34,645 nt of DNA from Macrostomum lignano. Taxonomy: Eukaryota. The translations under genes and the position numbers were made by a program. Positions 483 to 34,069 of the stretch are shown piece by piece (within the stretch, counting starts at the first letter, position 1; each line of letters starts with the position of its first letter). Location: assembly GCA_002269645.1 (NCBI GenBank), contig NIVC01004808.1:1-34645 (forward strand), read 5' to 3'. The notes below the pieces were generated by a model. That model saw only the letters and a list, made by a program, of their open reading frames with translations. It made no database searches and had not been told where the DNA came from.

Positions 483-642
<160 letters not shown>

Positions 643-5666: not shown

Positions 5667-5894
5667 GAGCCCGTGTCTCAGATTCCGCCAGATAAAAACT
5701 TGAAGCACCGCACTGACAGTCGGTCGATATTGGTGTTACGATTCACAAGAATATTGATCTGCACAAGACAAAGCAGGCAGGCTTGTTTTGCTCAAGGTCC
5801 ATGACACCATGCACTTTGCAGGATGCAGGAAGAAACCTGATATGAAGTATATTTAATATAAATATTCGATACTGTGTATACAATACACAAAATG

Positions 5895-6840: not shown

Positions 6841-7773
6841 ATTAAAGATTACAATAGACTGCTTGCGCAAAATAACTAAATCGTTGGCAAGATCATAATT
6901 CATTGAAGAAGCAATTAACGTTCTGAAGCGAGAGTAGCGCAATCTTAATAGTAATAACTATAAGAGTTATTAAATTAGTATTATAAAGTTTGCTACTGGC
7001 TGCTGCACAAGAGCAAGACCTCCCGCAGTGTCGGGGAGAAGCATCATGCAGCTATCATGCATATTTTTATTTATATAAAATATATTCGTAAATTAGCAAT
7101 AACACCGAACATTGCTACTCTTTTTTGGTATATTATCAACAATCGTACCAACCAGGGCAGTACATACCGGTACTTCAGTACAATTAATTAGTCAAAATAC
7201 TATTTTACTTCTTCAGCAATAAACACGCGCATATCCTACTTACAGCATCAGTAGTAGCAGTAGTTACATCTGACCTAGTGAACTTGAAAGATTATATAAA
7301 TATATAGCAATAATTCCAAAATTTAACTAATAATATTTTTATTAATAATTGTAGACATTGCAAAAAATTACACCAAAGCTACTACTATTACTATCATATG
7401 ATTTAAAGGCATATTTTATATAGATATAGCAATTAACAGTTTGAGTGGAAGCAGCAAAACAGGGCATGGGCAGACGCCAGGAAGGCAGGAACTGCCTATC
7501 AGAAATTATTGTTGACATTTATTTACCAACACAGAAGTTTATAATTAATAATAATATTAATAATAACAATAAGTCATTTAAAGCATTTGTCAAGCAAAGT
7601 CAGCACAACGCCCCCGCCCCAGCGCATTGGACACGCCAAGGAGATTAATAAATATAAATAAATAAACAAATTTGGGTTGCGGGCTGCGTTCAAATGCGCA
7701 GCTGCTACATGTAGGAGAGGATTTTGAATGGGCATCGAGTGCTGAGGGTAGCATTGGGAGGGGAGAGGAACAT

Positions 7774-8443
7774 GGGAGAGGGGAAGAGAGGAAGAAAGGG
7801 GAAGAGAGGAAGAGAGGGAAGAGAGGGGAAGAGGGGAAGAGAGGGGAAGAGGGGAAGAGAGGGGAAGAGACGTGAAAGGGGAAGAGAGGTGAAAGGGGAA
7901 GAGAGGGGAAGAGGGGAAGAGAGGGGAAGAGACGTGAAAGGGGAAGAGAGGGGAAGAGGGGAAGAGAGGGGAAGAGACGTGAAAGGGGAAGAGAGGGGAA
8001 GAGGGGAAGAGAGGGGAAGAGACGTGAAAGGGGAAGAGAGGGGAAGAGAGGGGAAGAGAGGAAGAAAGGGGAAGAGAGGTGAAAGGGGAAGAGAGGGGAA
8101 GAGGGGAAGAGAGGGGAAGAGACGTGAAAGGGGAAGAGAGGGGAAGAGGGGAAGAGACGTGAAAGGGGAAGAGAGGGGAAGAGAGGGGAAGAGAGGAAGA
8201 AAGGGGAAGAGAGGGGAAGAGGGGAAGAGAGGAAGAAAGGGGAAGAGAGGGGAAGAGAGGAAGAAAGGGGAAGAGAGGGGAAGAGAGGGAAGAAAGGGGA
8301 AGAAGGGGAAGAGAGGGGAAGAGAGGGGAAGAGAGGGGAAGAGAGGGAAGAAAGGGGAAGAAGGGGAAGAGAGGGGAAGAAAGAAGAAGAGAGGGGAAGG
8401 GAGGGAAGAAAGGGGAAGAGAGGGAAAGAGAGGGGAAGAGAGA
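7774..8443. repeat. Polypurine G/A-rich tandem repeat (GAGGGGAAGA-type, partial 45-bp period)
   Basis: Almost only G/A on the + strand. GACGTGAAA landmarks recur 45 bp apart (7931, 7976). Confidence 0.95.
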
Positions 8444-9149: not shown

Positions 9150-9585
9150 TGGACTTTGACCCCCGATGAACAACTGGGATAAGGGGGACTTTGACCCCCC
9201 GATGAACAACTGGGGTAAGGGGATTTTGACCCCCCGATGAAGAACTGGGGTAAGGGGGACTTTGACCCCCTGATGAAGAACTGGGTAAGGGGGATTTTGA
9301 CCCCCCATTGAAGGACTGGGTAAGGGGGATTTTGACCCCCCATTGAAGGACTGGGGCAAGGGGGACTTTGACCCCCGATGAAGAACTGGGGTAAGGGGGC
9401 TTTGACCCCCATTGAAGGACTGGGGCAAGGGGGACTTTGACCCCCCGATGAAGAACTGGGGTAAGGGGGGCTTTGATTCCCGATGAATTACTGGGGCAAG
9501 GGGGGCTTTGACCCCGGATGAAGGACTGAGGTAAGGGGGACTTTGAACCCTCGATAGACAAGGGTAAGGGGGGCTTTGACCCCTC
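9150..9585. repeat. ~35-36-bp GC-rich minisatellite, ~12 copies, each with a GGGGG-ACTTTGA-CCCCC hairpin
   Basis: Unit approximately GGGGTAAGGGGGACTTTGACCCCCGATGAAGAACT. Confidence 0.95.
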
Positions 9586-9918: not shown

Positions 9919-10204
9919 TCAGCGACATTCCCAAACCTTCACAGTTTGATCAACGCAGCCGCTGACCAAATATGGCGATTTCTTGTGAAAGTCAATTGTA
10001 GTAACAAAATGCGAGTGCGCGTCCAAGGTTTTCGTATTCCTTTTGTTCGCCAGGTCCCACACTCGAATGGTTTTGTCGTCCGAGCACGAGACCAGGTACT
10101 TGCCGCCTGGGTGGAACAGCACCGCCCGGACCCAGTTGTCGTGGCCAACCAGGGTGAACAGGCACAGCTGGGCGCTCGTGTCCCAAAACTTGATCACCCG
10201 GTCT
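9919..10204 (-). CDS. PAFAH1B1: LIS1/PAFAH1B1 exon 3 (last WD40 repeats)
   Basis: Acceptor cccgcag|A restores R-DRVIKFWD...[31 protein letters not shown]...[10 protein letters not shown]. The WECR C-terminus is characteristic of LIS1. Confidence 0.95.
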
Positions 10205-10285
10205 CTGCGGGGCGAACCGGATGTCAGAAGGTTGGAGTTCTGAGAAATTCTTCTTTGAACCTCAAATTGGCTCAAATTAAATTGG

Positions 10286-10960
10286 GAAATACCCCTGAGA
10301 CAGACTCCAGAGCACACTGAGAAATACCCCTGAGACAGACTCCAGAGCACACTGAGAAATACCCCTGAGACAGACTCCAGAGCACACTGAGAAATACCCC
10401 TGAGACAGACTCCAGAGCACACTGAGAAATACCCCTGAGACAGACTCCAGAGCACACTGAGAAATACCCCTGAAACAGACTCTGCAAAGCACACTGAGAA
10501 ATACCCCTGAGACAGACTCCAGAGCACACTGAGAAATACCTCTGAGACAGACTCTGCAAAGCAAACTGAGAAATACCCCTGAGACAGACTCCAGAGCACA
10601 CTGAGAAATACCCCTGAAACAGACTCTGCAAAGCACACTGAGAAATACCCCTGAGACAGACTCTGCAAAGCACACTGAGAAATACCCCTGAGACAGACTC
10701 CAGAGCACACTGAGAAATACCCCTGAGACAGACTCCAGAGCACACTGAGAAATACCCCTGAGACAGACTCCAGAGCACACTGAGAAATACCCATGAGACA
10801 GACTCCAGAGCACACTGAGAAATACCTCTGAGACAGACTCTGCAAAGCACACTGAGAAATACCCCTGAGACAGACTCCAGAGCACACTGAGAAATACCTC
10901 TGAGACAGACTCTGCAAAGCACACTGAGAAATACCCCTGAGACAGACTCCAGAGCACACG
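10286..10960. repeat. 35/36-bp minisatellite, ~19 copies, filling LIS1 intron 2 (10205-11020)
   Basis: Unit GAAATACCCCTGAGACAGACTCCAGAGCACACTGA at 10286, 10321, 10356 and onward, plus a TCTGCAAAGC variant. Confidence 0.97.
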
Positions 10961-11020
10961 GAGACAACCTGAACCTCAGGCAGAAATGCGGGCAATTCCA
11001 CAATGCAGCCAGTGAGTTAC

Positions 11021-11310
11021 CTGCCAGCGCTAACTAGGTAGGGCCCAGGCCTCTTGTTAGCATCGCCGCCAGCAGCCTGACAGACGGCCTCCTTGGCATT
11101 GTCTGGCGCCCAGGCTACGGCCTCAACAACATTCTCGTGCTCGCGCAGGTCCGCTTTGCACTCCTTGGTTGCTACGAGCCACACGCGGACTGAGTGATCG
11201 TTTGAGCACGAGGCGATTAAAGTACCGTCTGGGGACACTCGAACCATCCGGACCCACTGCTGGTGTCCGGCTAGGGTCTTCACGCAGTAGCCGGTGGACA
11301 CCTCCCACAC
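11021..11310 (-). CDS. PAFAH1B1: LIS1/PAFAH1B1 exon 2
   Basis: Acceptor cactttcag|GTG and donor GGC AG|gtaact (phase 2). Encodes [44 protein letters not shown]...[15 protein letters not shown]. Confidence 0.95.
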
Positions 11311-11425
11311 CTGAAAGTGAAGCATTTGTTAAAATACACATTGAAATGTATACTGTTACAGCTACTGAGCTCTGCAATATGAACATCTGAAAATATGTAA
11401 TGATCTGCGCAATGAAGAACTGAAA

Positions 11426-12225
11426 CTGAAGGCCTGAAGCTACACATTCACTCAAACCTGAAGGCCTGAAGCTACACATTCACTCGAGCCTGAAGGCCTG
11501 AAGCTACACATTCACTCGAACCTGAAGGCCTGAAGCTACACATTCACTCGAATCTGAAGACCTGAAGCTACAGACTCACTCGAACCTGAAGCTACACATT
11601 CACTCAAACCTGAAGGCCTGAAGCCATAGACTCACTCGAACCTGAAGGCCTGAAGCTACACATTCACTCGAACCTGAAGCTACACATTCACTCAAATCTG
11701 AAGGCCTGAAGCCATAGACTCACTCGAACCTGAAGGCCTGAAGCTACACATTCACTCGAACCTGAAGCTACACATTCACTCAAATCTGAAGGCCTGAAGC
11801 CATAGACTCACTCGAACCTGAAGGCCTGAAGCTACACATTCACTCGAACCTGAAGGCCTGAAGCTACACATTCACTCGAACCTGAAGCTACACATTCACT
11901 CGTACCTGAAGGCTTGAAGCTACACATTCACTGGAACCTGAAGGCCTGAAGCTACAAATTCACTCGAACTTGAAGGCCTGAAGCTAGAAATTCACTCGAA
12001 CCTGAAGGCCTAAAGCTACACATTCACTCGAACCTGAAGGCCTGAAGCTACACATTCACTCGAACCTGAAGACCTGAAGCTACACATTCACTGGAACCTG
12101 AAGGCCTGAAGCTATACATTCACTCGAACCTGAAGGCCTGAAGCTATACATTCACTCGAACCTGAAGGCCTGAAGGTGCAAATTCACTGGAACCTGAAGG
12201 CCTGAAGCTACACATTCACTGGAAC
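11426..12225. repeat. 32-bp minisatellite (with 24-bp variant), ~25 copies, filling LIS1 intron 1 (11311-12229)
   Basis: Unit CTGAAGGCCTGAAGCTACACATTCACTCGAAC. Confidence 0.97.
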
Positions 12226-12229
12226 TCAC

Positions 12230-12874
12230 CTTAATCAGCTGATCTCTCCCGGCAGACACCAGGAAATCCCCAGACGGTGTGAAATGCACCGAGGACACGT
12301 TGTGATCGTGGCCAGACAGTGTCTTCAAGCATTCGTAAGTAGTGAAATCCCACAATTTGACTTGCAGATCGTGAGAACAAGAGGCCAAAAGTTTGCCTGA
12401 AGCATCGAAAGCCAAGTCTTGCACAGAGTTAGTGTGGCCCTTCATCGTGCGCTCAAACTCGCCAGATTCATAATCCCACACCTTGATAGTGGCATCCTCA
12501 CTGGCTGAGACCATCTGAGCATAGATCGGGTGGAATTTCACGCAGGTGACTGGGCCCCGGTGACCCGGGAACTCATACTTCGCCGGCGGCCTCGGGATCC
12601 ACTCAGTAGGGGATCGTTTATCCCTCGATGGAGCACCAACGTTAATTTCGCTCTCAGCCTCCGATAATTTCTTTTCTAAATCGTGCACCTTCTTTTGCAA
12701 ACGAATCACTGATGTCCATTTCTTTTGCAGCAGGTCCTCATATTTTTTGTCAATTTCGCCTTGCAGCTCGGATTCTTCTTTGAACTGTTCAAATGTTTTT
12801 GTATAGCCCTGCGATTTCAGGTAATCGGCTATGGCTTTGTTCAGTTCTTCTCTCTGTCGTTGAGACAAAACCAT
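12230..12874 (-). CDS. PAFAH1B1: LIS1/PAFAH1B1 coding exon 1 (LisH, coiled coil, first WD40 repeats)
   Basis: [19 protein letters not shown]...[13 protein letters not shown]...[10 protein letters not shown]...[13 protein letters not shown]...[24 protein letters not shown]. Start context caccATGG, donor AAG|gtgagt. The three exons total 1221 nt = 406 aa plus stop. Confidence 0.97.
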
Positions 12875-13629
12875 GGTGACTTGGAGATGAATTGTGAGGT
12901 GAGAGCTGGCATGCATAAAGTTGATGATAGTCAGTACATTGATCACACTGGAGCCTTTTTGTCATTGCATTATAAATGCCCGTGCATATCTGTTCATTTA
13001 AGACATTCAAACACAGGATTCGACACTTACATAAGCTACTCATTTTCATTTTGTCATTTTTTTTATTTTCAAGTTCATGTTGTAATTCAGTTCATAATCA
13101 GTATATCAGTATACTTTACTTATAGATCTATTGTTGTTGCTCAAACAAACAGAACTTAATTTAACTAGTAGTGTTTCATCATAATTAAAAAGTACAAAGG
13201 CAATAAAAAGTCCTGTCACTTTAACATTAACATTTATTTTTGCTATAAACAGCAAAAATAAACGTTTATAATATTGTCATATGAGAAAATGACATTAATG
13301 TAAAAAATTCCAGGCTCTGTTGTAACATACAAGAAGTTTTAAGTGTCTATGGCCATTCTTTCTCCTCATTTGTCAATTTAGGACCATAGACATATAGGCA
13401 TAGGTATTTATGGGCCTAGATTCACTGTAAAAGGAAAAAGAATGTCAGGATAAATTTTAATTTGTTGGCATGGTCTTACCATACTTCAAAAATGATCAAT
13501 CAGTTAATCAATTATTCAAATTTGCCTGGAGAAGTTCTATTTGGTATGTCAATCAAAGAGCTAGCCTGGATTTCAGTGGAGTCAAACAGCCAGTATTTGG
13601 AGGAATTGAGCAAGGAATTGGCAGACAAG

Positions 13630-13955
13630 ATTGAGTCAGAAGAGATTCTTGACATTCCAGCACTGGTCACAAGAATCCAGAAAGTGTAGAATGATACTCA
13701 AGGATTAGGAGAGACGCCAACTTTAGAACTATGTCCAAAGCCCTGTCCATTGACACTAGTACATCAACTGTGTGCATTAAGCATGTGGGCCCTACTGGTA
13801 TAATGTCAATCAAGGAATTAGTAGGTACCTGCACAGTTCATCAAGCTAAAGGTCAACCACATTTGCCTTTGCCCATTTCAACAATCAGTGTCAATTTTTC
13901 TGACACATTTCAAAATTGTACATTTGATTTTGATTTTAAAGGCCTGAACAACTAG
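13630..13955 (+). mobile_element. Degenerate Crypton-like (DUF3504-type) tyrosine recombinase C-terminal remnant
   Basis: The frame starting 13662 reads TGHKNPESVE*YSRIRRDANFRTMSKALS...FQNCTFDF. This matches the TGH-x-S-x3-Y...MS motif and the terminal F-x-NCTF-x-F that I associate with DUF3504/Crypton proteins. It has an in-frame stop and an upstream frameshift. Confidence 0.5.
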
Positions 13956-14109
13956 CGGACCCAATGTTTTAATAATGAATAATTTGGCACATTAACGGCA
14001 ACTCAACTGACTAACTGTTGACTAACTTGTCTTCTAAAACCACATTGTATGCGCATGTTTTGTTTTGTTGCTTTGTTTGTATTCCATCTATTGAAATAAA
14101 AATCTCATG

Positions 14110-14285
14110 CCAATAAGAGTTTCTTGACTATTATGATAGTGAATGTTATATAAGCTAAAGACCAAAGCTCAAAGCATGCAATGGAAGCATCCCAATAAGT
14201 CCAAAGCATCCCAAAAGCCAAAATGGTACCATTTGATAAAGAAGTGGATAAGAGCACTATCTGGGATCAGCAAAGGACATAACAG
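14110..14285 (+). mobile_element. Mariner-type transposase fragment (degenerate)
   Basis: YKLKTKAQSMQWKHP resembles mariner Y-x-PETK-x-QSMQWKH. A shifted frame gives TIWDQQ, resembling TVFWD. The catalytic GDE is not intact. Confidence 0.6.
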
Positions 14286-14802
14286 TCATGGGAGACCTAT
14301 TCATTGCTACATTGACTACATAGGCATCCTTGGTAAACCAGTTGTTACAAATACTAAGTTGAAGACTAGTATAATATAGGCATTTAAAAGCTCCCAAAGT
14401 ACTGGGTTGAGCCACCAAGTGTGTCATTGCACTTTGAGATTGCCTTTAGAAGGCAGAAATTCTACCATAGGATAGAGTAATCCAAACTCAGAGCTTAAAG
14501 AAACCACCTTAGGACAGAATACCCAGTGAGTAAGCTGTGACCCTCTGATCCTGGGAACGTCCAGGACTGAGTATAAAAAACCTTAGAGTATAGATAGGAA
14601 TTAGACAGTGCCATAAGACCACTTAGGCCAAAAGTACAATACATGTACATATGCTACCAGTAGATCAATACATGCACTACTAGTAGATATATATGCTACC
14701 AGAAGTACAACATCTATAAAAGTACAAGTATTATAAGAACTAATTAATATAACTTTGGAAACTTAACAGAGATTTTAATAAAGAGAAGTTTAGCCTTCTG
14801 AC

Positions 14803-18156: not shown

Positions 18157-18564
<408 letters not shown>

Positions 18565-19928: not shown

Positions 19929-22570
19929 ATGACTCAGCAATTCTCACTCGCGCCACCCGGCTCGTTTACAATCGATAGCGATTGCAACTCCACTGCACAG
20001 CGCTGGACTGCATGGACTCGTCGCTTCGCCACTTGGATGGAAAGAATAACATTGTGTTCCTGCTTTTCAAGTTTCAGACCTGCAGACAGCAGCCTGGCGA
20101 GCCGATCGACCAGTGGTATCAGCGTCTGCACAAGGCGGTGGAGCCGTGCGAGTTCGGGTCCCTCAGAGACTCACTGATCCGAGACAAAATCGTCGCCTAC
20201 TGCGAGTCCGAGAGACTTAGGAGAGACTTCTTGCAGACCAACAGCATCTCCCTGGCAGATGTGCTCAAAAAGGCGAGGGCGAAAGAAACCGCGGAGCAGC
20301 AGGCCACCGCAATGGAGAGCGACAGACCAGGAGAACCGCAGCAGCTCGCAACAGTCAGAAGAGACGGGCAGCCGCCAAGACCGCAGGCACCGACGCAGCG
20401 CGTATTCTGCTATCACTGCGGGAGACCGGGGCACCCCACGTGCACCGCAGCGCAGGGCAAGAGCTGCAGAAAGTGCGGGAAGCCGGGCCACTTCGCACGA
20501 GCCTGTAGGTCAACGCCGTCGCAACGCTGCAAGGCAAGACCAGCTACCAGAAGGTGGACGACCCGGACTCTGGCGTGTTCGAGGTCGACCAGGGTGAGCT
20601 GTCGGCCCACACAGTAGCCGAGATCAACGGTTCCAGACTGTCGGTGTTAATCGACAGCGGCGCGGCTCGAAATGTGATCAAACGGGCCATGTTCGAGAGC
20701 CTGAGACAGCGACCGCACCTGCAGACCACCTCGGACAGGCTGTTCGCGTACGGGTCGGACCGGCCGATGCAGCTGCTGGGCAAGGCGGCGATGACCGTCC
20801 ACATTTTCGGCCGGCAGGCAGTCGCCACGTTCGACGTCGTCGAAGGGAGAGGCATCACCATCATCGGCAGGCAGACGGCCACTCAGATGGACATCCTGCG
20901 TGTCGGACCACCACCTAATGCCGGCCAGCAGGTGCTGCAGGTCGCTGAAGTGGAGGCGGTGGTCGACGGCCTCCTTAGCGGCACGATATCCAGCGGAGTG
21001 CCTCAAAAACACGTCGAGGACATCGGAAGGGTGCTGGCATGCCAGCGTGTTCAGCGGCATCGGCTGCTTCACTGGACCGCCTGCCGGCATCCACCTCACC
21101 GACAGCGCACGCCCGGTCTGCGATGGGCCTTCGAAGGTGCCGATCCATCTGGCAGACGTGGTGAACAAGGAACTGCAGCTACTGGAGCAGCTCGGGATCA
21201 TTGAGCCCGTCGACGGTCCAGCGCCGTGGGTTGCGCGGATGGTCGTCGTGCTCAAGAAGGAGCCGAGCGAGGTGCGCATCACGCAGGACCTCCGCGATGT
21301 CAACCGCTTCGTCATCCGCGAGCGGCACCAGATTCTCGAGGAGTTGACCGGGGACATGGCCGGCAGCACTGTGTTCGATCTGAGCTGGACATCGCGAAGG
21401 CGTTCTACCAGGTGCCTGTGGCAGAGAAATGCCGCAACCTGCTGACATTGTCAACGCCTCGCGGACTTCGCCGTCTCACCCGGCTGTGCATGGGCCTGTC
21501 CACCTCCCAGGAGATCCTGCAGAATGTGATGAGTCGAGTGCTGGCAGGCCTGCCCAACGTCAAATGGATCCACAACGACGTGGTCGTGTTCGGCCGCACG
21601 ATGGCGGAGCACAACAGCAGCCTTGAGGCATGTCTGGCCCGCCTGGCGCAGCACGGCATCACGCTGAACGCTCGGAAGTGCCGACTGGCGCGCAGCAGCA
21701 TCGAGTTCATGGGAATGCGGCTCACGGCGGAAGGAGTCCAGGCCACCGAAAGCAAGGTCGCCGCCGTTCGAGACTTCAAGGAGGCGGGACGATTGGACAC
21801 CTTCGCTCATTCCTAGGCCTCGTGAACTACTCGTACCTCGCCGTGTTCACGCCACAGCTAGCCAAGGTGGCGGAACCGCTGCGGCGTCTGACCAGGGAGG
21901 GTGTCAACTGGCAGTGGGGCGCCGACCAGGCCAGCGCCTTTGAGCAGCTGAAGCGCAGCATCGCGGAGCCGACAACGCTGGCTTTCTACGATAAGCAGCT
22001 GCTCATGCAGCTGATCGTGGACGCGGGGCCGACCGGACTGGGCGCCATCCTGGCGCAGGTGCAGCGCGACGGCAGCTCGAGGCTGGTTGCATACGCCAGC
22101 CGAACCCTATCCGACGTCGAGCGGCGATACTCGCAAACCGATAAGGAGGGACTGGTCTTCGAGGAGGCCTGAACTTTGAGTACTACCTGCATGGATCGCC
22201 CCAGTTCACAGTGGTCTTCGATCACAAGCCGCTGACTGCCATGTTCGCGGCTGCCTCCACGAGTCGAGCGAATGGCGCTGAGGATCCAGCACCTAGTGTT
22301 CAAGGTCGAGTACCAGCCGGGAGCCTCCAATGCTGCAGACGTACTCAGCAGGCAGCCCGGAAGCTTTGGCGAGCATCAAGGGAGGCCTACATCAACGAGG
22401 TGGCGCAGGCGGCTGTCCCGTTGGCGTTGACGCTCCAGGACATCCGCAAGAGCTCTGCCAGCGACCTAGTCATCCGGGCGGCGAAAGCGGCGACGCAAGG
22501 CGGCCGGTGGGATCGCTCCAATTCCGAGATACGCTGTCTGCTCGGGGTCCTCCCTCGGCACCAGCGAATC
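19929..22570 (+). mobile_element. Decayed Ty3/Gypsy (Mag-like) retrotransposon: gag-PR-RT-RNase H, integrase and 3' LTR missing
   Basis: Gag start LAPPGSF..QRW..W.RRF, two Cys/His knuckles (CRKCGKPGHFARAC), protease LIDSGA, RT PWVARMVVV..DLRDVN..LDIAKAFYQ with the YxDD motif as IHND, RNase H IVDAGPTGLGAIL..VAYASRTL..YSQTDKE..DHKPL. Many frameshifts. Abrupt end at AT-rich DNA. Confidence 0.93.
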
Positions 22571-22901
22571 GGCCGAAAACTAAATTTAGAAATTTAAAGT
22601 TTTAAATTTTATGTGTATTTAAAAACTTTGGATACAATTTTAAATTTTAAGTGTAAAATAAACTTTCATTTCGATTAATATTTATAGTTATTTTACACTT
22701 TCGATTATCAATATTTGTCCAAAATCGTTAAAGTCAACACCGTAAAGCCGCAGATTCCAATTATGGTTTTGCCTGTTAAGCAGATGTAACAAGTCCGGTA
22801 TATTTACTTAGCGAAGGTGGCTAGCGTACAAATACTATAGGAGTAGTATATAGTATGCGCATTTCAGGTCTGGACGATTTACCAGTAGCTAAAAAGAAAT
22901 G

Positions 22902-22964: not shown

Positions 22965-23613
22965 AAGGAAAAAACTACAAATCGCATGTTTGAATATAAG
23001 TAGAATTTCTTAGAAACAGAATCCAAATTAAACACTTTAAATATACAAGGATCTATAAGAATCATGGAAACTCACAAAATAATAAGAGATACCAAGCCGT
23101 TACACAACACTGATGTGAGGATTATAAAGCTATATAAGTTGTTCTGGCAGTGCGCACAGTATTAAAAAATTCTAGAATTAACTCAAAGATTAAAGTTTCC
23201 CTTGAAATTAATTAGATTCAACAACAGAAAAAAGTAGGTGATGTAGTCAAATACTCCTTCGACTTCCGCGGTTGTCGTCATACTGCCAGAGCGCATCCAA
23301 GTTGAACTCATGTAGCCATACATGTATAAATGTACAGAAAGAACAAGATAGCTGTATCAGAAGGCTATCTAAAAATAAGTATTTGCCAGTAAAAAAACAT
23401 TTTTTAAAAATACACATCATGCTTTGGATAGTACGTAGCTCGTAAATAGCAACACAACAAAGCAGAGTCCAAAGATCGGTTAAGCATTCGCTTTTGATGA
23501 TTGAAGAAAGGCCGAAAGCGGTTCGGAAAAATCGCAAGAAATTCAATAGTTCGACATGTTCGTTGCTTCTATATGCGTCCAAAAAACATCACATGAGCCA
23601 GCTATAAAGTTTA

Positions 23614-24645
23614 TCAAGGCTGCTGCTGAAGCAGCAGCCGCACCGCCTCTTCAGTCACAGCCGAGTTGGCCACGGCGACGGCACGGATGACGCCATTCAA
23701 TATGAACTTGCCTGGATACCGCCAGCCGATCTTGATGCAGGCGCCAGCATTGTTATATTTAAATTTGGAACCGTTGCCAGAGTTCAGGGGCTCAGTTAAA
23801 AAGGCGGATCCCAGCAGAAATCGGCGTTCACCTGACGGCTTATCTGTTGACAAGCCAGCGATGAAGAAGCGCTCAGGGTCGGCGGGCAGCACAGAGCAGG
23901 TTTGGACCCAGTTTTTGTCGCCAATATTGGAATACAGACATCGCGTCTTTCCTGCAACAAGGCTGTATTCACAAAAGTGGCTTGAGTATGAGCTCATGTC
24001 TTCTAATGATCCGCAGTTGTCCAGCTCGATGAAGCACTGTTTCTTGGGAGTTCTCTTCAGGTGCAGCACCCAAGTGTAGGACGCCGTGAAGTCCAGACCT
24101 GTGGGGTCGTCCACCCACAGCCGAGACGAGACTCCGTCCATGCGAGCGCCCTCACTCGTCCAGGTCACATTGAGCGACTTCATGGGGTTCCTCTGTCCCT
24201 CGGAGCCGCACACCAGGTTCTCCAGCGCCGGTCCCCTGTCTCCGACCCACACAGAGCTGAAGTGCTCGTTCGCAGCGATCGCGTCGTACTCCGAGTCCAC
24301 CACGGTCTCGCAGGTGCTCTCAGCGGCCACTGCCTCAGTCGGTGTCGTCGAGCTCAAGTTGAGCAGGTGGCACACCTCACCGAAGCGGAACAGCGCGCAC
24401 GAGGCGTCTCGCTTGTTCCGCTGCACCACACCGACGCTGCCGAGACGGAACGACCGACTCGACACGAAGCAGTCGAGCAGGGAGGCGGAGGGTCGCGACA
24501 GCTGCCACACAGACAGCGACAAGTTCAGGCAGTCATTGTTGGCTACTCTGTGCTGTGTAGTTTTGTCTCCGTTCACACAGTCAGAGACCGAGAGCAGGGC
24601 GCACAGAACAGCGAGATGTAGGAGGCTGGACATTTTGCGGCGCAT
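23614..24645 (-). CDS. Secreted protein: signal peptide + degenerate PAN/apple-like module + concanavalin A-like/LamG_3 domain
   Basis: Start at 24645 or 24633. Signal-like MSSLLHLAVLCALLSVSDC. Cys pattern SLLDC..CALFRF..CHLL. LamG_3-like ARMDGVSSRLWV..LDFTASYTW and FILNGVIRAVAVANSAVTEEAVRLL. Single exon, tandem stops TGA TAA. Confidence 0.75.
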   Translation of the reverse strand: MRRKMSSLLHLAVLCALLSVSDCVNGDKTTQHRVANNDCLNLSLSVWQLSRPSASLLDCFVSSRSFRLGSVGVVQRNKRDASCALFRFGEVCHLLNLSSTTPTEAVAAESTCETVVDSEYDAIAANEHFSSVWVGDRGPALENLVCGSEGQRNPMKSLNVTWTSEGARMDGVSSRLWVDDPTGLDFTASYTWVLHLKRTPKKQCFIELDNCGSLEDMSSYSSHFCEYSLVAGKTRCLYSNIGDKNWVQTCSVLPADPERFFIAGLSTDKPSGERRFLLGSAFLTEPLNSGNGSKFKYNNAGACIKIGWRYPGKFILNGVIRAVAVANSAVTEEAVRLLLQQQP

Positions 24646-26200
24646 TGCAAGCTTCAGTGAGTCAGTAGAAGAGAATTCTGCCAGTATGGAGAGACTCGGC
24701 ATCGGATTTTATGGCAGTTTTGAGCTTTTGGCTGATCAGTGAAGGCGTTTTAATTGCCCAAGACAGCGCATAGGCTGCATGCAGCAAGTATTACTGGGCA
24801 AACGAAGTCATTGCCAATCAGCCATGCAGAAGAAGAGACGGAGGGAAAGCACGAAGTCGCAATGCGCGCTAAATCCGAACGACTTTAAGCAGATCCATTA
24901 ACAGGAAGCGAGACTATCTATAGGAGTTGCGAAAAAGATAATTTAGACCAAGAAATTGTTTCATCACGTCCAAATATAGGTGATGCTTTATAGCGAGTAT
25001 TTGTTCGCAGCTTTTCAGCAAGTCTACTTGCTGAGCGAGTGAGGTCCCATTTCCTGACTGTATGCAAATAAACAAAAACCATTCGTATAACAAGTGCAGT
25101 TACCGGTTCATTCGTTTCATTTTAAAATGGTATATTTTTATCGATTTTAGGCCGATTTATGCAACTCAAAGCGCATTGAAACAGTTCAATATGATAGTTG
25201 GTGGGGATTAGATAGACAGAGGTCTGTGGGTTAAGAAGGCGGGATGCCTGATAGGAAGGTTTGGGAATTGGCAAAGGCCTGCGCAGACAGCGATTCTGGA
25301 TAGGGAATTGGCAAATCGCCAGGTTAGAATAGTAGTCTGGGGAAGATCAGTGTGATTACTCAATTGGGAAGAGACTGTACACTCAGTTAGGGAGGGGAAG
25401 GCGAAAAGGCTGTACGCTTATAGCGGAACAAAAAGGGCCTTCTCAGGGAAGAGGGGAGAGGCTGTACAATCAGAACTGAACAAGACCTCTTTAGGGAAGG
25501 GAAAAAGGCGAGGGCGCCTTCAAAGGAATGACACTGAGTCTGATCTATTTTTAGAACAACTGTTCATGCGGCCGAAAGGCAAAGGCCAAATAGAAGCTTA
25601 GGCGGCAACAGAATCCGATATATTTGCTCGTATATATACGCTATTTAATAAAAATGGCGGACACTTTTTAACAAAACCTTGAAAATAGTAAGCACTATGA
25701 GCATATTTGAGACAGAAAATGATATTTAGGCTACTTTTAATGATCAAATAGATAGGAGTAATTTGCTAATAAAGGAATATATATTTTTCATAACGCATTT
25801 AACGAGTAATATACATAAGGTAAGCAATTATTACAATATCACTATATCATAATTAAAAGATTCAATAATAAGAAAATAATAGAATACTACGGTATAGTTT
25901 TAGGCTTGGAATTCCACACTTACTTTGCTAGAATATTTTAGTATATCATTCAAATTTTGAAGACACTTGCCACCTTTTCAAACTGCTTTGCTTTAAAAGT
26001 TGACACGCTAGTTTCTGTTTTCGTAGCTACCTGAATTTAAGAACCAAGAAAATCTTGCTGTACGAGTTACTATCTACTATCTACTGTACTGCAATACTAC
26101 TTAATGCAAAGACTGTCTTCAGAATATTTGTCGCATTGAGGAAAAACTGTTTTTTAAATTGATAGTTACTGACATACTGTCATAAATTACTTTACCGTCT

Positions 26201-26665
26201 TCAATTTCTTGTCAATTTTTTTTGCTGCTGCTTAGAAAGTTTCAGAAGCTGGTCCAGTTTGGATTCAATGCTTAAAATTCGCTGCTCCTGCCGCTTCAGC
26301 TCTGTAAACACCGTCTGACCGCTGTTGGTCTCCTGCTTCTTTTTCGGAGTCAGATTCGGTCCCGCAGACATATTTTCTTCAAATACCTTTGTCTCCTGGT
26401 GCAGCGAATCGTGCCTGTGATAGCTTACCTTTCCTAATTGGCCTTGAATATTCGCATCGTCCAGCATCTCCTGCAAATCCATTTTTAACTCCGACAGTTC
26501 CTTCCCCGTGTGCGCCTTCACCACGTCAAAGTCGTTTCTGTTCCACTGGGTGTCGCGCAGCAAGCGGGACCGGCACCAGCGGAACTGTGTCGCCTGGAAC
26601 TTCAGGAACCGATTGTACTCTTCGGGGTAGTCCTTCTTGTCTTTGAGCCACCAAAGGATGGTTTT
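26201..26665 (-). CDS. TRP channel last exon (C-terminal coiled coil)
   Basis: Acceptor ttttgcatttcag|AAA in phase 0 with the donor at 26771. Ends ELKRQEQRILSIESKLDQLLKLSKQQQ. Confidence 0.8.
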   Translation of the reverse strand, partial: KTILWWLKDKKDYPEEYNRFLKFQATQFRWCRSRLLRDTQWNRNDFDVVKAHTGKELSELKMDLQEMLDDANIQGQLGKVSYHRHDSLHQETKVFEENMSAGPNLTPKKKQETNSGQTVFTELKRQEQRILSIESKLDQLLKLSKQQQKKLTRN

Positions 26666-26771
26666 CTGAAATGCAAAAGAGAATTTTCGAAATAGTATAG
26701 ACGTGATTAAAATAAATGACTCCAATACAAATAAATGAGCTGCAACAAAGAGATTTCGAAAAGTCACTTAC

Positions 26772-29700
26772 GTCATCAGCACTTGCGATATTTTCATCTT
26801 CGACAGCATTTTTCGTGCAAAACTTTTTAGAGCATCGACTGACTATGAACAAAACAAATTTAAAAATGTACTCCAGAAAACTCAATGGCGGCGGAAGTAG
26901 AGTCGACTGCCGGTACTCCTGCAACATCTGGACGAACCGCTTTCTCCAGACGCCGATCGCCACGCCATAAATCTGTGTGACTCGCAAATTGAACAGTGCA
27001 ATCAGCAAGTTCATCATCACAACATTCACCAGGCCCATGAATAAGAATATTATTAAATAGTTAAACCATTCATAGCCTTGCTTAATGGCGACCTTTCCTA
27101 GCTTCGTGCTATCTGGAGAGTAGCTCAACTCGATCTGATCGAAGTTGCCGAACAGCAAGTTCAGAGGTATCGTGGCAGCTTGAACAAACGTTTCCCATCC
27201 GTTGCTTAGAGTAGCGAGTCCTTCTGTCGGAGTCCAGACGTCCGAAAACAGCAGACACACAAAGAATACTCCAAAGCAGCTGAAAATCACGAACAAGACC
27301 ACCAAGAAAGGCAACAGGTCGTAAACAATTAGATTCCAAAGCATGTTAATCATTGGCCCAACGGTCTCAAAGTAGCTCAGGAACGAGACGGATCGAAAGC
27401 AGAACAGTGAGTACGACACGCACAGGACAACTTGACTGGAATAAGCATCTTGTAGATGAAAGCCCATCCCATAATATAGCCATCTTGTAGAAAGGCCGGC
27501 CAGCAGAAACAGAATCGCCAGAGCATCGAAAATATTGAGCCCATCAACAATGTAGGCGGGAACAGATCGTACGTGAGAACCGATCTTGCAGTTCTCTCTA
27601 GCTTTTCGTTGTCTCCAGATTTCACTCAGTTCTTGCAAGCCAAAGGAAAAAAGATAGGCAAAAAGAAGAGCGTCAAACTGTGGTTTTAAGAAACTGTCCT
27701 CGAAATTAATAACGTACCAACCAAAGAATACGAGGAAACATATGAATGCGACAAAGTGGGTCCAAAACCTTGCCAGTGGAGAATCCGGTCTCGAAATTTT
27801 TGGCCTGCAGCTGCAAGCGCTGGGGCAGCAGTCGCACGGAAGACAGCAGTTTCCGGATGAACCTCGCTTTGAGCAGTTTGAAATGGGCTGCCTCCACTCC
27901 TCTTTGGTGACTGAATAGATGCAGTCCGTGGCAAACAGATCCGGGTTGTCAGCTATTTTCACCAGATCAAGTATGCTTTTATACTTAATTTTCTCTGGAT
28001 TCCCGTCTTTAAAGACTCGGTACGGAAACTTCGGTCCCAAACAGTCGCGATTTTCCTTCTTTGCTGCTGCTTTGCTATCTAAAGTAAAATGCTTCATTTC
28101 ACCTTTAATGTACTTGAACAGCAGCTCGAACTCGATGCTGTCAGCGTTAACAAACAGCTCATTGAGTGCGTTCACTGCAATGTTCGTGATCTTGCTTTTT
28201 AGTTGAAGCAGCTGCTCATGCTTGCCCTTTGCCTTGGCTCTCATCTTGATGATCTCGGGGTCCAGCTGGATGAGCAAGCTGAGGCAGCACGGAATAAGCT
28301 CGAACTGTCGAGTCAGAATCAGATCAGGCAGGATCTCATCACGATGAAAGAATGTGGCCAAGTCTAGAAGCGCCAACTCAGAATTGGGATCCACATGAGT
28401 CAGGTGCTTGAACGTGTTCTGTCTGGAAAAAGCTCGCTGGATTTCTTCGTCTTCCGTTACTGTGTCAATGAAATACTGCGTAAATTGTCTCTCGGTTTCA
28501 CTCGTGATAATGTTTAGGCTGAGTGCCGCACGAAACAGCTTTCTGGAGTCCATTTCTAGCGCTTTGATCAGAACTATCTTGTCCGTTTTTTGCTGCTTTG
28601 TACTATAGTCATTGGTTATAGACACCAGAGTCATTCTCGCCGCTGACCTGTTGGGAAGTTTAAGCGCTCTTCTCGGCGGATCCAGAAGGCGCCATATGTC
28701 CGTCATTTTGATTTCTTTCTGAGAGGTAAATGCATCAGAGCTTGGAACGTTATTCTGGTTCTTTTTGTCTTCCTGGACAGCTTGAAGGAGATCGTATAAG
28801 TTTCCGCTTTCAAAGGCATAGTCAACGCATGTCTGCCCTGAATGCGATTCGCTCCAAAGGCTCAAGCCATTTTCAAGCAGGAAAATTATATTTTCTTGAT
28901 GTCCGTAAGCGCAGGCAAAGTGCAAGCAGGTCTCTCCGTGCTGCGAGTTTTCGCAAGATTGTAGCTTGACTTTTTCTTTAAGCAGGCTATTTGGAGGACT
29001 CTTCGATACAGTTTCTATACTTTCCAACATCAAATTCTTTAGCTTGTACTGACCTGAAAATGTGTGAATTATGTGAGCGCCAGTCTTTGAATTGACCAAA
29101 AGTTTATCGAAGTGACTCCTGGCAGTTTCGTCCGAATGAACTTTATCCAGCAGCTTGCAGAGCACCAGAGCATCAAGCTTTGTTGCGTGCAGGCAGTTCA
29201 AACTGAGATTGTTGGTGGCTTCCACATCTACTCCCTTCTCGACGAGTAGCTTGAATCGATTCAAAAGGTGCTGCTCGAAGCCATCATATGTTAATTTGCT
29301 CTGCATCAGCGAATGTAGCAAAGTGTTTCCTCCTATGTCGGTGAGGCAGAGCTCATCCGTTGTCATCTCTTCGATAATGTTCGTAATGTTTAGTTTCTGA
29401 AAATTGTCCATCACGTCGATCGCCAGGTGAAGCACCGATTGATTTTTGTTATTTAGTTTGCTTAAAGCTTTCTTCATATCAACTTCTTCGTGAGAGAACA
29501 TTGTCTCCAATAATTCACTTTTATCTGTTCTCTGTGCAGCAATGTGGAAGATTGTGTTGCCCTCTTTGTTGGCAGTCTGAAGGTTTTGGCCTTCTTTTAT
29601 CTTAGTAAGCAGCACTCGAACAGTTTCCAAGCTGCAATTTTCAACAGCGTAATGAAGAACTGTGGATTTGTGCTTGTTCTCATCCATGAGACAGTCGAGT

Positions 29701-30682
29701 TCAGTCGGTGGACTCTGACTCTGTTCAATGGCGGCTTCAACAGCTTTCAGAAGCACTGCATCTCTTTTGGGGCGCTGAGCGATCGCATGCAGACATGTGT
29801 TGCCCTGCTTGTCTTTCAATTTATACCAATTTGGCAGCGATTTGTCTAATAAGAGTTCAATAAGTTCGGTTGCTACTTTCTCGTTGTTGTGCCGAAGGGC
29901 CAAGTGTAGAACCGTTTCTCCCAGCTTGTTTGTAGGCTTTAACCAATGAATTTCGCTTTGTGATGAAGTCTTCATTCGTGACACAAACTTAATGGCATCG
30001 ACTTTGTTTTTAGCAGCAAAATGACCCATGGTATTGCCATCAATATCTTCTCCGCCAAGAATGTCCTTTGAATTGCCTATTCCATGCACAATCTTCTCAA
30101 TAACTTCTTCGTGCAATACTGAAGTACATGGTGCAACACTGTTGCATTTCTATTGTTTCTCCATTTCAAGCAAGCTTTAGAAGCTATTCTCGTCACTGTA
30201 AGCATCATTTGGCAGTCTTGAGAATTTTGAGCAGCCCAGTGAGCGCAGGTGTCTCCGTTAGCGTCTTTCAACCTAAACATGTTGACCTTTTTTACAGCTT
30301 TGAAGTTCTGTTCCCAAGACTTAGCTGAGTGATAGCGCGCTGACAGATGCAACGGAGTGATTTCGTCAACGTCAGGACTTGTGAGGCAGCCTGGTCCGAA
30401 TCTCTCGATGAGTTCAGCGAGTGCAGCTTCTCCAAACTTGTTCATGGCTGCATAATGAGCGGCTGTTCTGCGATTGTCGTCACGTAGCAGCTGCAGAGTT
30501 GCACTTTCAGCAGTTAAAATTTTACTGACGTCACTGAATTGGCATTGATTTGCACGCAGATACAGTCTCTTGCTTGGATCTTTTTCAATTGCATCAAAGT
30601 CTATTCCCCAAACAGTCACGGTCCTTTTTAAAGTAGATACTTGTTTTGCGGCGCGCTGTAAACGTTTAAGTTTGTCCGCCAT
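26772..30682 (-). CDS. TRP cation channel main exon: ~15 ankyrin repeats + MHR4-like linker + 6TM + TRP box (1-nt frameshift at ~30111)
   Basis: Repeated G-x-T-x-LH-x-A motifs, S1 SPLARFW, S3 LNIFDALAILF, S4-S5 VGPMINM, S6 NVVMMNLLIALFN, post-S6 W...LQEY...LLPPP. Donor GAC|gtaagt at 26771. ORFs 30077-30682 and 26526-30116 join at YC-T-EEVIEK if one base is restored, giving ~1458 aa. Confidence 0.9.
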
Positions 30683-31870: not shown

Positions 31871-32689
31871 ACCTAATGAACTATTGCCTTGTTGACTCTC
31901 TTTTGACGTATTAATAAACTTATGGAAATTATTTACGCATTAAAAAGTTAAAGGGGAAAGTTACATACGTTTCTTCGAGTCCGTACAATATTATAGCAAA
32001 TATAAACAACTTTGTTTACTAACTTACTGAAATAATGTGAGTTTAAAAAATTCCTTTAGAGCTTCTGACGAGCAAATTTTTACTAGCAGCAGCGTTTACT
32101 GGTAGCTTTATTAGCACCTGCTGTAGTTTTTATCTATTCACCAAAGCGAAACTTTGGTTGTAAATAGAATTTTGAAACTGCGGGTAGAGTTGAGTTGAAC
32201 AGCTGGGGGTAGCTTATTGAGTCTTTTTAGCTCGCACAATACCCACTGCACCGACCCCATCACTGGCCTGGCGTCTAAAGCATTGTAACAAATTGGCTTT
32301 GACTCTGTTTCTATATGAATGAGTTTTACAAGAAAGTCTAAAAGATTCGAGAGACCCCAGCTCTAACTACTGTCCCTATTCAAGTTGTGTAACTCTTTCT
32401 GAAGTTTTTTATTGTAGGCGTAGCTAAAAGCAGCTCTGCTTTCTCATATTATTAGATAGATGAGACCCAGCAGAAAAATTCCATTTAGTTTCGAATTTTC
32501 CTGCGGAGAAAAAAACAATAAAATGGCTGTTAATAAATAGCATCACTGGTTTTGGCCTGCAGTTTTGTAGTTGAAATATATGACCATTATAACAATAGGA
32601 CAGCGAGCACAACAATGGGCAGGGGAGAGGAGGCAAATGAAGAGCAGTACGGGCCCAAGGCAAGCTGACATGGATCGACGGACCGCTAC

Positions 32690-34069
32690 CGCCCGTCGGT
32701 ACCCGCTACCGCAGAGATGTACCGCGAAACCGCCGATCTGCGCCCATCTCCCAGCAGTTTGATGCGGTCCACGCTCATCCCAGCATTGAAAGCAAACGTC
32801 ACTTCACAACGCGAGTGCGCAAAGAAGCTGGAAGCCTCCAGTCCGGTCTTGCAAAACAGGCGATGCAGGCGGTGGCGGATCCACCTCTGAGTCGGCGGCC
32901 GCCAAGATCGCGGCTCTGATGAAACTGAGAATATGGGGAGACTCTGAGACGCATCAGAAAGGCGATTCAGCTGCCAGTGATGTCGGAGCGCAGCCACAGG
33001 ACACAATTTGAGAGCAGCTGCTGAACTCGGGCCCATGACCGGGAGCTGGATGATGTGAACGCGCTCACCGAACTGCACTTTCTTTGAACGAGCTATATAG
33101 ATGGTAGCACCAGCACGGCTCAACTTGACGTCAGAGATCTTGATCTCGCTCGCCGAGTCACTAAATTTCTTTCGGGCGCACAGATTACCGAGGCGAAGCA
33201 TGTCAGCCAGCCCGTGAGCACGAGAGCCCACAGGAGCCCGCAAAGCAGAATCTGCTGGTGAATGCGCATCAAATGCTCCGGTCGGAGCGGTTGCTTAGTG
33301 GCTGGGGTCCACGACTTGCTTCGATCCCGTCTAATTCAGTTTAGGATGAGTGGCAAAATTAGAGCTGTACAACTTCGTCAAGACCGAGGCAGCGGCAATA
33401 CCAGCTCAACGCTGGCAGATGAAGTTGAAGACTGTTGAACGAAAGGTGAAAAGAGATGTCGGAGAGGTAGAGTACGAGAAGCTCCACCGTGGGCTGCTCA
33501 GGTCGTTCATTTAGCCCTTAACAGAAGCGACACCAGACTCGCCAGACAGACGCGTAGGTCAGCCGCGTCGACTCCTTCAGAGACAAGTCGATCAGATGAG
33601 CCGCCTGCCCCCGAAGCCGCCGCACCGCAGGGTCAGGACCTGTAAAAGCAGAAAATGGGAGGCAGCAGAAACAGCTTGTGGGAAGCAAATTCAGACGGGC
33701 ATACTTGCACAGTGCCATAAAACCCATGCAAAAGTTAATGAGGCCAGTCCGAGAGTGAAGACGCGAAATAGAATCAGCATAAGTTTTGACACTAGCCCGG
33801 CACATGAAAGAACTTCAACACAACGTTGTTTGTGAAGCAGAAGGGACCAACAGTCTGAAGCAAACGCAACAGCTTAGAGTCATTTAGAAGCAGCCTTGTT
33901 GAGAATGCAGACAGCTGGATCATTGTCAACGTAGCAAACAACCTTGCGCACTGGCTCAGCAGCGGGCGAAGAGTGAGAAGTGGCAAGAGAGCTCATCAAT
34001 CCGGCTGCTCCACGACGCCAGCGTTCCGTATCGAAACTCTATTAAAAGTCACTACCGTCAAATCGCATT
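32690..34069 (-). mobile_element. Decayed DIRS/Ngaro-type element: RNase H + tyrosine recombinase
   Basis: RNase H: KVVCYVDNDPAVCILNK..FFHVPG..ADSISR. YR: STRLTYASVWRVWCRFC..MLRLGNL..RSKKVQF..LCPVAAL..AHSR..TFAFNAG..IKLLG..SAVSRYI. Stops and frameshifts throughout. Confidence 0.88.

Follow-up and report, generated by a model that had tools for sequence, protein, structure and literature searches.

The closest described counterpart of the gene reported here is the schistosome channel TRPM_MCLZ (Smp_333650), a 1380-aa, Ca2+-permeable protein encoded by three exons; its activation by meclonazepam increases cytosolic Ca2+, and it is without the NH2-terminal MHR1/2 or SLOG region and carries N-terminal ankyrin-like repeats instead (PMC11731825, PMC10788528, PMC12861061). 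The term 'TRPM-like' was applied to TRPM_MCLZ in PMC12861061, where it is placed 'next to' other TRPMs. TRPM and TRPS channels, in contrast, are described as being without ankyrin repeats (PMC7306681). Here we analyze a gene of the flatworm Macrostomum lignano that lies at 26201..30682 on the minus strand of a 34,645-nt stretch of DNA (assembly GCA_002269645.1, contig NIVC01004808.1, positions 1 to 34,645), hereafter called the window. It joins a long ankyrin array to a channel core of the TRPM type. We conclude that the gene is a divergent relative of the published flatworm TRPM_MCLZ design, not a new class; the novelty is the large, divergent expansion of its family in Macrostomum, which is undescribed in the literature searched. 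An earlier interpretation, made from the letters alone and referred to below as the sequence-only reading, had suggested a possible family outside the standard classes. That suggestion does not stand, as the design is already published as TRPM_MCLZ (PMC11731825, PMC10788528, PMC12861061).

An ankyrin array and a channel share one reading frame

The rebuilt product of the gene has 1458 aa. Its central open reading frame (ORF; 30116..26526) is stop-free over 1196 codons and runs from the ankyrin repeats through S6 to the TRP box and the LPPP motif. Ankyrin repeats and channel also share one continuous ORF at two loci that hold paralogues (L001 and L003) and on a metagenome contig (L002), and the sequence of the ankyrin-channel junction is kept in at least 18 paralogues. 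Because the two parts stand in one ORF, they are fused, and no cDNA is needed to show the fusion. The sequence-only reading had allowed that they might prove to be separate; the uninterrupted 1196-codon frame speaks against this.

The array occupies 28764..30505 on the minus strand (residues ~60-640) and comprises about 15 degenerate repeats. Fifteen x-T-x-L-H-x-A units begin at residues 71, 107, 143, 179, 216, 255, 294, 339, 375, 414, 452, 494, 532, 583 and 616, spaced 33-49 residues apart. Pfam matched the window protein to ankyrin families only: Ank_2 (1.3e-29, six stretches), plus Ank_4, Ank, Ank_3 and Ank_5. A permissive ANK profile gave 12 weak matches whose positions coincide with the periodic units. 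The canonical ANK profile found only three repeats at E<0.01, and the array is hence long but degenerate. As that profile was trained mostly on TRPN repeats, we took the repeat count from motif periodicity and Pfam. The outcome agrees with the sequence-only reading, which had placed some 15 repeats at about 28820-30500. In this the window protein differs from TRPM channels, which are described as having no canonical N-terminal ankyrin repeats (PMC7306681).

This array stands in place of the SLOG/MHR1-2 region of TRPM channels. The Pfam scan of the window protein returned neither LSDAT_euk nor LSDAT_prok at E<=1, and a query with a vertebrate TRPM N terminus found SLOG in 30+ other matches and in none of the family members, the window protein included. 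No TRP_2, NUDIX or TRPM_tetra match was obtained in the same scan. Of the domains proposed at the outset for such a scan (Ank, SLOG, TRP_2 and NUDT9H), Ank was thus found, and SLOG, TRP_2 and NUDIX were not.

The channel core is of the TRPM type

By sequence, profile and predicted structure, the channel core is TRPM-type. When we searched PDB chains with the linker and core by phmmer, the matches were to TRPM2, 1, 3, 7, 8, 4 and 5 (2e-18 to 2e-5), with TRPM2 best at 2e-18; NOMPC (4e-7) was the sole non-TRPM entry among the 60 matches listed, beyond which lie at most eight chains at E<=1. A profile search of the PDB placed TRPM2 at 1e-28, and its best 60 matches, down to E 2.3e-11, were all TRPM. 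A hidden Markov model (HMM) of the family's S1-TRP region gave mean scores of 137 bits for the flatworm ankyrin-bearing group, 115 for SLOG-bearing TRPM, 48 for TRPN, 25 for TRPV1, 12 for TRPC3 and 10 for TRPA1. In the reverse test, the family scored 144 bits with the TRPM HMM and 35 bits with the TRPN HMM. Alignment of transmembrane (TM) profiles by hhalign ranked TRPM (E 1e-44) ahead of the TRPM_MCLZ group (8e-39) and TRPN (1e-12).

Predicted structure pointed the same way. We modeled linker, TM and TRP regions (649 residues) with AlphaFold2 (AF2) from a 68-sequence alignment; the model had a predicted local distance difference test score (pLDDT) of 85.8 and a predicted TM-score of 0.83, with disorder confined to a Cys-rich stretch before S1 and to the end. 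A model made from a 6-sequence alignment (pLDDT 48) was discarded, and the 68-sequence alignment cured the low score. In a Foldseek search of the PDB, the best 50 matches were all TRPM2/3/4/5/7/8, over 643-740 aligned columns, with query TM-scores (TMq) of 0.55-0.61. Since the TM and TRP regions are only 52% of the model, the linker contributes to this score.

Trees were built by neighbor joining on ScoreDist distances (312-317 columns, 200 bootstraps), and their deep nodes are weakly supported. TRPN cores came from the full-length homologue search; for TRPC3, TRPA1 and TRPV1 we used target sequences shown in PDB alignments, which, at one sequence each, form long single branches. Besides these outgroups, the trees comprise the family, the TRPM_MCLZ group and other TRPM-like sequences. 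The Macrostomum family was monophyletic with 99-100% bootstrap. A firm place of the core inside TRPA, TRPC or TRPN, named beforehand as the outcome that would overturn a TRPM-like core, was not what we found: bootstrap support for the family joining TRPN, TRPC or TRPA was 0-1% (TRPN 0%, TRPA 1%). PDB searches, HMMs, hhalign, trees and Foldseek all bear out the TRPM-like core that had been read from the letters, although two of the markers then taken as TRPM-specific are not. LPPP after the TRP box also occurs in TRPC3 (EWKFAR...TLPPPF), and the pre-S1 pattern F.A...Q..L...W also matches TRPN.

In sequence, profile and fold, the window family matches classical TRPM1-8 best over linker, S1-S6 and TRP, and it shares with them the E/N/D of the Ca2+ site within its voltage-sensor-like domain (VSLD), a WK/R..R TRP box, LPPP, and an FGN filter as in zebrafish TRPM2. 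It differs from them in having no SLOG/MHR1-2, NUDT9H or kinase and no Pfam TRPM_tetra match. It resembles TRPS (ced-11-like, soromelastatin), a sister group of TRPM, in its TRPM-like core and in its place outside both the alpha-TRPM and the beta-TRPM clade; TRPS differs from it by carrying SLOG and Nudix domains and by being without ankyrin repeats (PMC7306681). With TRPN/NOMPC it shares the order of long ankyrin array, linker helices, six TM segments and TRP domain, and the TRPM pre-S1 linker is homologous to that of TRPN. However, its ~15 degenerate repeats contrast with the 22-29 canonical repeats of the TRPN proteins found, and its core is far from TRPN (35-48 bits versus 115-144). TRPC channels have ~4 ankyrins, TRP_2 and EWKFAR, whereas the window protein has no TRP_2 and a VWRKRF box. 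Unlike TRPA, it has a canonical TRP box.

The linker is MHR3/4-like in predicted fold

Between the ankyrin array and S1 lies a helical linker of 312 aa (27783..28718, minus strand), the counterpart of TRPM MHR3/MHR4 according to AF2, Foldseek and hhalign. The AF2 model makes it all-helical, with pLDDT mostly >85, and its predicted fold is MHR3/4-like. At the level of sequence, homology to TRPM is transitive and runs via the TRPM_MCLZ group: hhalign joined the family linker to the TRPM_MCLZ-group linker (96%, E 3e-9, 139 columns) and the latter to TRPM MHR3/4 (99%, E 1e-18, 166 columns). The Foldseek matches and this transitive homology together support the MHR4-like linker of the sequence-only reading. 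Pfam did not detect PF25508, which covers part of MHR3/4, in the window protein.

Three segments of the linker stand out. The motif LILTRQFELIPCCLSLL (28272..28322, minus strand) occupies invariant columns in our linker-TM-TRP alignment (A1) and is colinear with RMRQFDVLPASVLVTL of the TRPM_MCLZ orthologue described below. The pre-S1 motif SILDLVKIADNPDLFATDCIYSVTKEEWR (27891..27977, minus strand) contains a Trp (W275 in A1 numbering) that is nearly invariant in TRPM-like channels, being present in at least 90% of the TRPM-like sequences aligned; the F.A...Q..L...W region of TRPM to which it belongs is also homologous to TRPN linker helices (hhalign 97%). Next to the membrane, the Cys-rich stretch SKRGSSGNCCLPCDCCPSACSCR (27804..27872, minus strand) has nine Cys in 23 residues and is predicted to be disordered (pLDDT <50 at A1 residues 281-306). 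It occurs in most close paralogues and is missing from one (P0009). We regard this Cys cluster as a candidate site of palmitoylation or metal binding.

The gene is a divergent relative of TRPM_MCLZ

An exhaustive search with a profile of linker, TM and TRP (alignment A1) against 1.84 billion cluster representatives gave 991 matches at E<=1e-3. The first matches beyond the family itself were ankyrin-bearing flatworm proteins, and SLOG-bearing TRPMs came next. This nearest non-family group has few ankyrin repeats, Ion_trans and no SLOG. Its sequences come from M. lignano, Schistocephalus, Dicrocoelium, Fasciolopsis, Opisthorchis, Mesocestoides, Anoplocephala, Hymenolepis and Heterobilharzia, and several of them are auto-annotated as 'TRPM7'. 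In the Heterobilharzia protein (P0237), residues H827, H831, Y864, E868, R943, (H/Y)946, Y1038 and Y1117 stand at the published spacing. Because the pocket residues are spaced exactly as published, P0237 is a TRPM_MCLZ orthologue, and it served as our stand-in for the Schistosoma mansoni TRPM_MCLZ sequence. The nearest non-family group thus includes orthologues of TRPM_MCLZ, and we call it the TRPM_MCLZ group.

BLASTP of the window core against P0237 gave 23% identity over 330 aa (E 3e-16), and a second, colinear high-scoring pair in the linker aligned LTRQFELIPCC with RMRQFDVLPAS. The two designs share N-terminal ankyrin or ankyrin-like repeats without SLOG/MHR1-2, a helical MHR3/4-type linker with RQF[ED]..P, an S1-S6 domain of the TRPM type, and LPPP after the TRP helix. 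Both have few exons (three in Smp_333650, two in the window gene) and are flatworm-restricted. Rooting with TRPN unites the family and the TRPM_MCLZ group (65% bootstrap) as the sister clade of every other TRPM-like sequence. The two groups are possible orthologues, with this 65% clade in the TRPN-rooted tree, no such clade once TRPC3, TRPA1 and TRPV1 are included, a linker hhalign probability of 96%, and TM profiles that score TRPM slightly above the TRPM_MCLZ group.

The differences are considerable. The M. lignano genome also has closer TRPM_MCLZ-like genes, represented by P0088, P0094 and P0096; in these three members Pfam reports a partial 'TRPM2-like domain' (PF25508), which is absent from the window protein. 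The filter reads FGNFD in the window protein and IFEVS in P0237. About 15 repeat units are detectable in the window protein, versus 2-3 canonical-profile matches in the TRPM_MCLZ group. Whereas the family is massively expanded in M. lignano, parasites have one TRPM_MCLZ gene, some with two duplicated-exon isoforms (PMC12861061). In the meclonazepam pocket, H831 is replaced by F, Y864 by F and residue 946 by S (P0237 numbering), the last being the S4 residue that sets meclonazepam sensitivity. With Ser at this position and differences at three of the seven pocket residues, we do not predict sensitivity to meclonazepam.

An observation from the TRPM_MCLZ group itself concerns the Opisthorchis viverrini model P0075 / P0212, named 'ankyrin repeat protein', which contains two consecutive TRPM_MCLZ-type linker and channel cores. 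This double core fits the duplicated, probably alternative, exon 3a/3b of trematode TRPM_MCLZ (PMC12861061).

Alternative placements and the origin of the ankyrin N terminus

Could the gene instead be a divergent TRPN, TRPA or TRPC member whose likeness to TRPM is superficial? The full-length search drew TRPN1/NOMPC proteins through the ankyrin repeats, NOMPC was the one non-TRPM protein among the 60 PDB matches listed, and TRPC3 likewise has LPPP past its TRP box. These similarities are outweighed by the core. The family fits the TRPM HMM far better than the TRPN HMM (144 versus 35 bits), its own HMM scores TRPV1, TRPC3 and TRPA1 at 25, 12 and 10 bits, bootstrap replicates joined it to TRPN, TRPC or TRPA in 0-1% of cases, the window protein shows neither a TRP_2 match nor an EWKFAR motif, and the best 50 Foldseek matches are all TRPM. 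We regard such a placement as highly improbable. Within the TRPM-like placement, a separate question is how the ankyrin array came to be there. The sequence-only reading held that the TRPM N terminus had been replaced by ankyrins; our trees cannot separate replacement from ancestral retention. Under retention, the TRPM-like flatworm clade with ankyrin repeats would have been without SLOG from the start, would descend from an ankyrin-bearing TRPM/TRPC/TRPN ancestor and would be sister to TRPM plus TRPS, as opposed to a TRPM with an exchanged N terminus.

Several observations are in keeping with retention. The family and TRPM_MCLZ clade is sister to, not nested in, the other TRPM-like sequences of the TRPN-rooted tree, and PMC12861061 puts TRPM_MCLZ 'next to' other TRPMs. 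TRPC and TRPN have the same order of ankyrin repeats, helical linker and TM region, and the membrane-proximal linkers of TRPM and TRPN are homologous (97%). MHR3/4 has been reported to hold divergent ankyrin repeats (Burroughs 2015, as cited in PMC13143021). On the other hand, all named members found are from flatworms, so that losses would be needed in every other animal lineage. A basal position is also what long-branch attraction of fast-evolving sequences would be expected to produce, and the internal branches concerned measure 0.04-0.05, with support of 52-65%. Finally, in the inference of Himmel et al. 2020 (PMC7306681), the loss of ankyrin repeats predates the divergence of TRPM and TRPS. 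On balance we consider retention unlikely, though worth keeping in view. A broader version, in which the Macrostomum family and TRPM_MCLZ are the surviving pre-SLOG branch and a further group-1 TRP family sister to TRPM plus TRPS, with dozens of rapidly evolving paralogues as a receptor-like repertoire in Macrostomum, seems to us somewhat less likely still. The choice between an ancestral and an acquired array touches the published inference of ankyrin loss before the TRPM-TRPS split (PMC7306681).

Channel core, TRP helix and C terminus

The S1-S6 transmembrane domain, including the S1-S4 VSLD, lies at 26988..27779 (minus strand), as delimited by AF2 helices and alignment to zebrafish TRPM2. 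In that alignment E1018 (27630-27632), N1050 (27534-27536) and D1053 (27525-27527) pair with the E, N and D that zebrafish TRPM2 has in its S2/S3 motifs EEIRQ and WNILD. The corresponding A1 positions, E363, N395 and D398, are invariant in the family, and E363 and N395 are nearly invariant across 68 TRPM-like proteins. At the fourth Ca2+-site position, which is Q in TRPM2, six aligned paralogues have E, E, K, E, E and D. In known structures of TRPM2, TRPM4, TRPM5 and TRPM8, the Ca2+ by which these channels are gated or potentiated is bound at these four VSLD positions.

The pore helix and selectivity-filter motif LLFGNFD are at 27138..27206 (minus strand; AF2 helix 505-522), and zebrafish TRPM2 has FGNFP at the place of the filter. 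The TRP helix, with the TRP box VWRKRF and LLPPP, follows at 26886..26981 (minus strand; placed by TRPM2 alignment, A1 conservation and translation); W591, E601, P610 and P611 (A1) are nearly invariant across the 68 TRPM-like sequences. Beyond it, a conserved cytosolic segment, WW..D..YPEEYNRFLKFQATQFR.CRSRLL...DFDVVKAHTG (26498..26653, minus strand), is kept in all full-length paralogues and in L002. Heptad scoring suggests a C-terminal helix at 26222..26329 (minus strand) that is a putative tetramerization coiled coil: over a stretch of 28-36 residues (1417-1452), 75% of a/d positions are L/I/V/M, and the motif R.K.MESKLD.LL.L is conserved among paralogues. Despite this conserved heptad helix, Pfam gave no TRPM_tetra (PF16519) match in the window protein. 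The helical linker, six TM segments, TRP box and coiled coil of the sequence-only reading could all be located, the coiled coil as a prediction, and translation reproduced its motifs SPLARFW, YIVDGLNIFDALAILF, NLLIALFN...VWRKRF...QEY...LLPPPL, LILTRQFELIPCCLSLL and SILDLVKIADNPDLFATDCIYSVTKEEWR.

Gene structure and integrity of the window copy

Three overlapping ORF pieces on the minus strand make up the coding span 30682..26201, which begins with an ATG at 30680-30682 and ends with a stop at 26201-26203; all feature coordinates were verified by translation. The upstream piece (30682..30077), beginning MADKLKRLQ, is joined to the central ORF through a 1-nt frameshift at 30113..30114, within repeat 5, where the window reads TGCACG-AAGAAG. 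An M. lignano database entry (P0001) that is 98% identical to the window protein has QYCTEEVIEK here, which implies the unshifted form ACGGAAGAA; the shifted form is ACGAAGAA. Paralogues at L001 and L003 pass this site within one ORF. The downstream piece lies beyond a 106-nt GT-AG intron (GTAAGT...TTTCAG; 26666..26771, minus strand) 3' of the TRP domain. The position of this intron is common to L001 (~90 nt), L003 (172 nt) and L002, and the window gene, L001, L003 and L002 have two exons each. Neither the frameshift nor the intron appeared in the sequence-only reading.

Two explanations would undo a working gene at this locus. One is that an error of assembly or annotation has joined an ankyrin gene to a separate channel gene. 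Faulty database models do occur in the family: segments are skipped in P0004, a STIM-like protein is attached to P0054, and two cores stand in P0075. Four independent loci with ankyrin repeats and channel in one ORF contradict this explanation, as does the junction sequence conserved in at least 18 paralogues, and we give it practically no credence. The other takes the window copy for a family pseudogene that died recently. The frameshift ends the frame after 201 codons, the loss of one copy would be cheap in a large family with many near-identical M. lignano copies, and dN/dS (the ratio of nonsynonymous to synonymous substitution rates) is 0.51. However, the frameshift is the sole lesion in 4.4 kb, the remaining frames are all open, and the missing base sits in a GG dinucleotide. 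Moreover, P0001 is intact at this site and carries its own frame error near the C terminus, where the window is intact; single-base assembly errors would account for these reciprocal defects, and the differing positions of the two hint at such errors. We consider a pseudogene unlikely, though the chance deserves mention.

The P0054 model deserves a separate remark. This M. lignano entry (UniRef A0A1I8IKQ9, 1988 aa) combines a family member with a STIM1-like EF-hand and SOAR region, and is more likely a merged model of adjacent genes than a genuine fusion.

The family is expanded in Macrostomum

Matches to the A1 profile down to ~1e-43 span its whole length, linker included, and correspond to ~30 clusters at 50% identity, nearly all from M. 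lignano; the paralogue search that the sequence-only reading had called for thus revealed an extensive family. Full-length M. lignano paralogues at 77, 59, 54, 52 and 35% identity to the window protein have an identical layout. Two word-indexed homologue searches with core profiles returned flatworm proteins only and no TRPMs; their sensitivity was limited, and they have little bearing on wider distribution. At least part of the family is organized as tandem arrays: L001 (NIVC01000045.1) holds three channel paralogues head to tail in 25 kb, at 22-3128, 10001-14711 and 23045-24706. The P0003 gene at this locus consists of one 1385-codon ORF and a short intron, and the L003 paralogue of a 1491-codon ORF and a short intron.

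The metagenome contig L002 (GCA_036350755.1, JAZBNS010000602.1, 5106 bp) encodes a full family member of 1537 aa and belongs to a metagenome-assembled genome of a 'Kangiellaceae bacterium'. Since it carries a GT-AG intron at the family position and the conserved last exon, it is a eukaryotic contaminant of the bacterial genome, and its source is probably a flatworm. The protein stands in NCBI as bacterial (MEE4247282.1).

Comparing the window gene with the L003 paralogue, we obtained a dS of 0.33 and a dN/dS of 0.51. By region, dN/dS was 0.33 in TM-TRP, 0.55 in the ankyrin array, 0.58 in the linker and 0.62 in the C terminus. Selection between these two paralogues is moderately purifying and strongest on the channel domain.

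Proposed function and significance

The likely product of the locus is a subunit of a 'TRPM-like' cation channel of flatworms. Several of our own results weigh against this view or against the kinship with TRPM_MCLZ on which it draws. With its frameshift at 30113/30114, the window copy as assembled cannot yield the full protein. For an ion channel, a dN/dS of 0.5 is high. Ion_trans stayed below the Pfam threshold on the window protein. Support for the clade of family and TRPM_MCLZ group stands at only 65%, and the clade disappears when TRPC3, TRPA1 and TRPV1 join the tree. Compared directly by hhalign, the family linker and TRPM MHR3/4 gave no significant match (probability 5%), and only four of the seven meclonazepam-pocket residues (H827, E868, R943 and Y1117) are kept.

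Such a channel would be tetrameric and nonselective for cations, with four subunits around a central FGN-filter pore and the C-terminal coiled coil assisting assembly. Because the E/N/D of the TRPM Ca2+ site is invariant and is joined by a fourth E/D/K position, gating would probably be Ca2+-dependent, with a VSLD pocket open to small ligands. The ankyrin array may substitute for the nucleotide-binding SLOG region as a cytosolic sensor or tether. Tandem expansion together with a dN/dS of ~0.5 suggests a lineage-specific sensory repertoire, and a lineage-specific sensory role would fit both the expansion and the fast evolution of the family.

TRPM_MCLZ-type channels are validated anthelmintic targets. 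M. lignano is a free-living flatworm amenable to RNA interference and transgenesis, and it carries TRPM_MCLZ-like genes together with a large, divergent sister expansion, which amounts to dozens of natural variants of the scaffold. These paralogue variants could address ankyrin sensing, variation of the VSLD pocket, and whether the ankyrin N terminus is ancestral or acquired.

Other features of the window

A 590-aa ORF at 1304-3076 (plus strand) encodes a rhodopsin-family seven-transmembrane protein (PF00001, 8e-15) with a very GC-rich, proline-rich C-terminal tail and is probably an intronless G protein-coupled receptor gene. A LIS1/PAC1-like gene with LisH_PAC1 and WD40 repeats occupies 9919-12946 (minus strand) in at least two exons; tandem repeats between its exons, at 10286-10964 (35/72-mer) and 11422-12225 (32-mer), produce long spurious ORFs. 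At 19982-22600 (plus strand) lies a degraded long-terminal-repeat retrotransposon gag-pol, with zf-CCHC, aspartyl protease, RVT_1 and RNase H spread across several frames and a GC content (0.62) richer than its surroundings.

Five large tandem-repeat arrays are present, at 4742-5666 (23-mer x40), 5891-6842 (37-mer x26), 7776-8442 (purine-rich 10/18/45-mers), 9151-9583 (35/71/106-mers) and 18157-18561 ((TAG)n x135); satellite-like DNA makes up about a tenth of the window. Two ORFs on the minus strand have no Pfam match. The 362-aa ORF at 23614-24702 has a hydrophobic N terminus and several N-x-S/T sites and may encode a secreted or membrane protein. The other, of 185 aa at 32686-33243, ends in ...LLGDGRRSAVSRYI..., which we take to resemble the catalytic end of Crypton/DIRS-type tyrosine recombinases.

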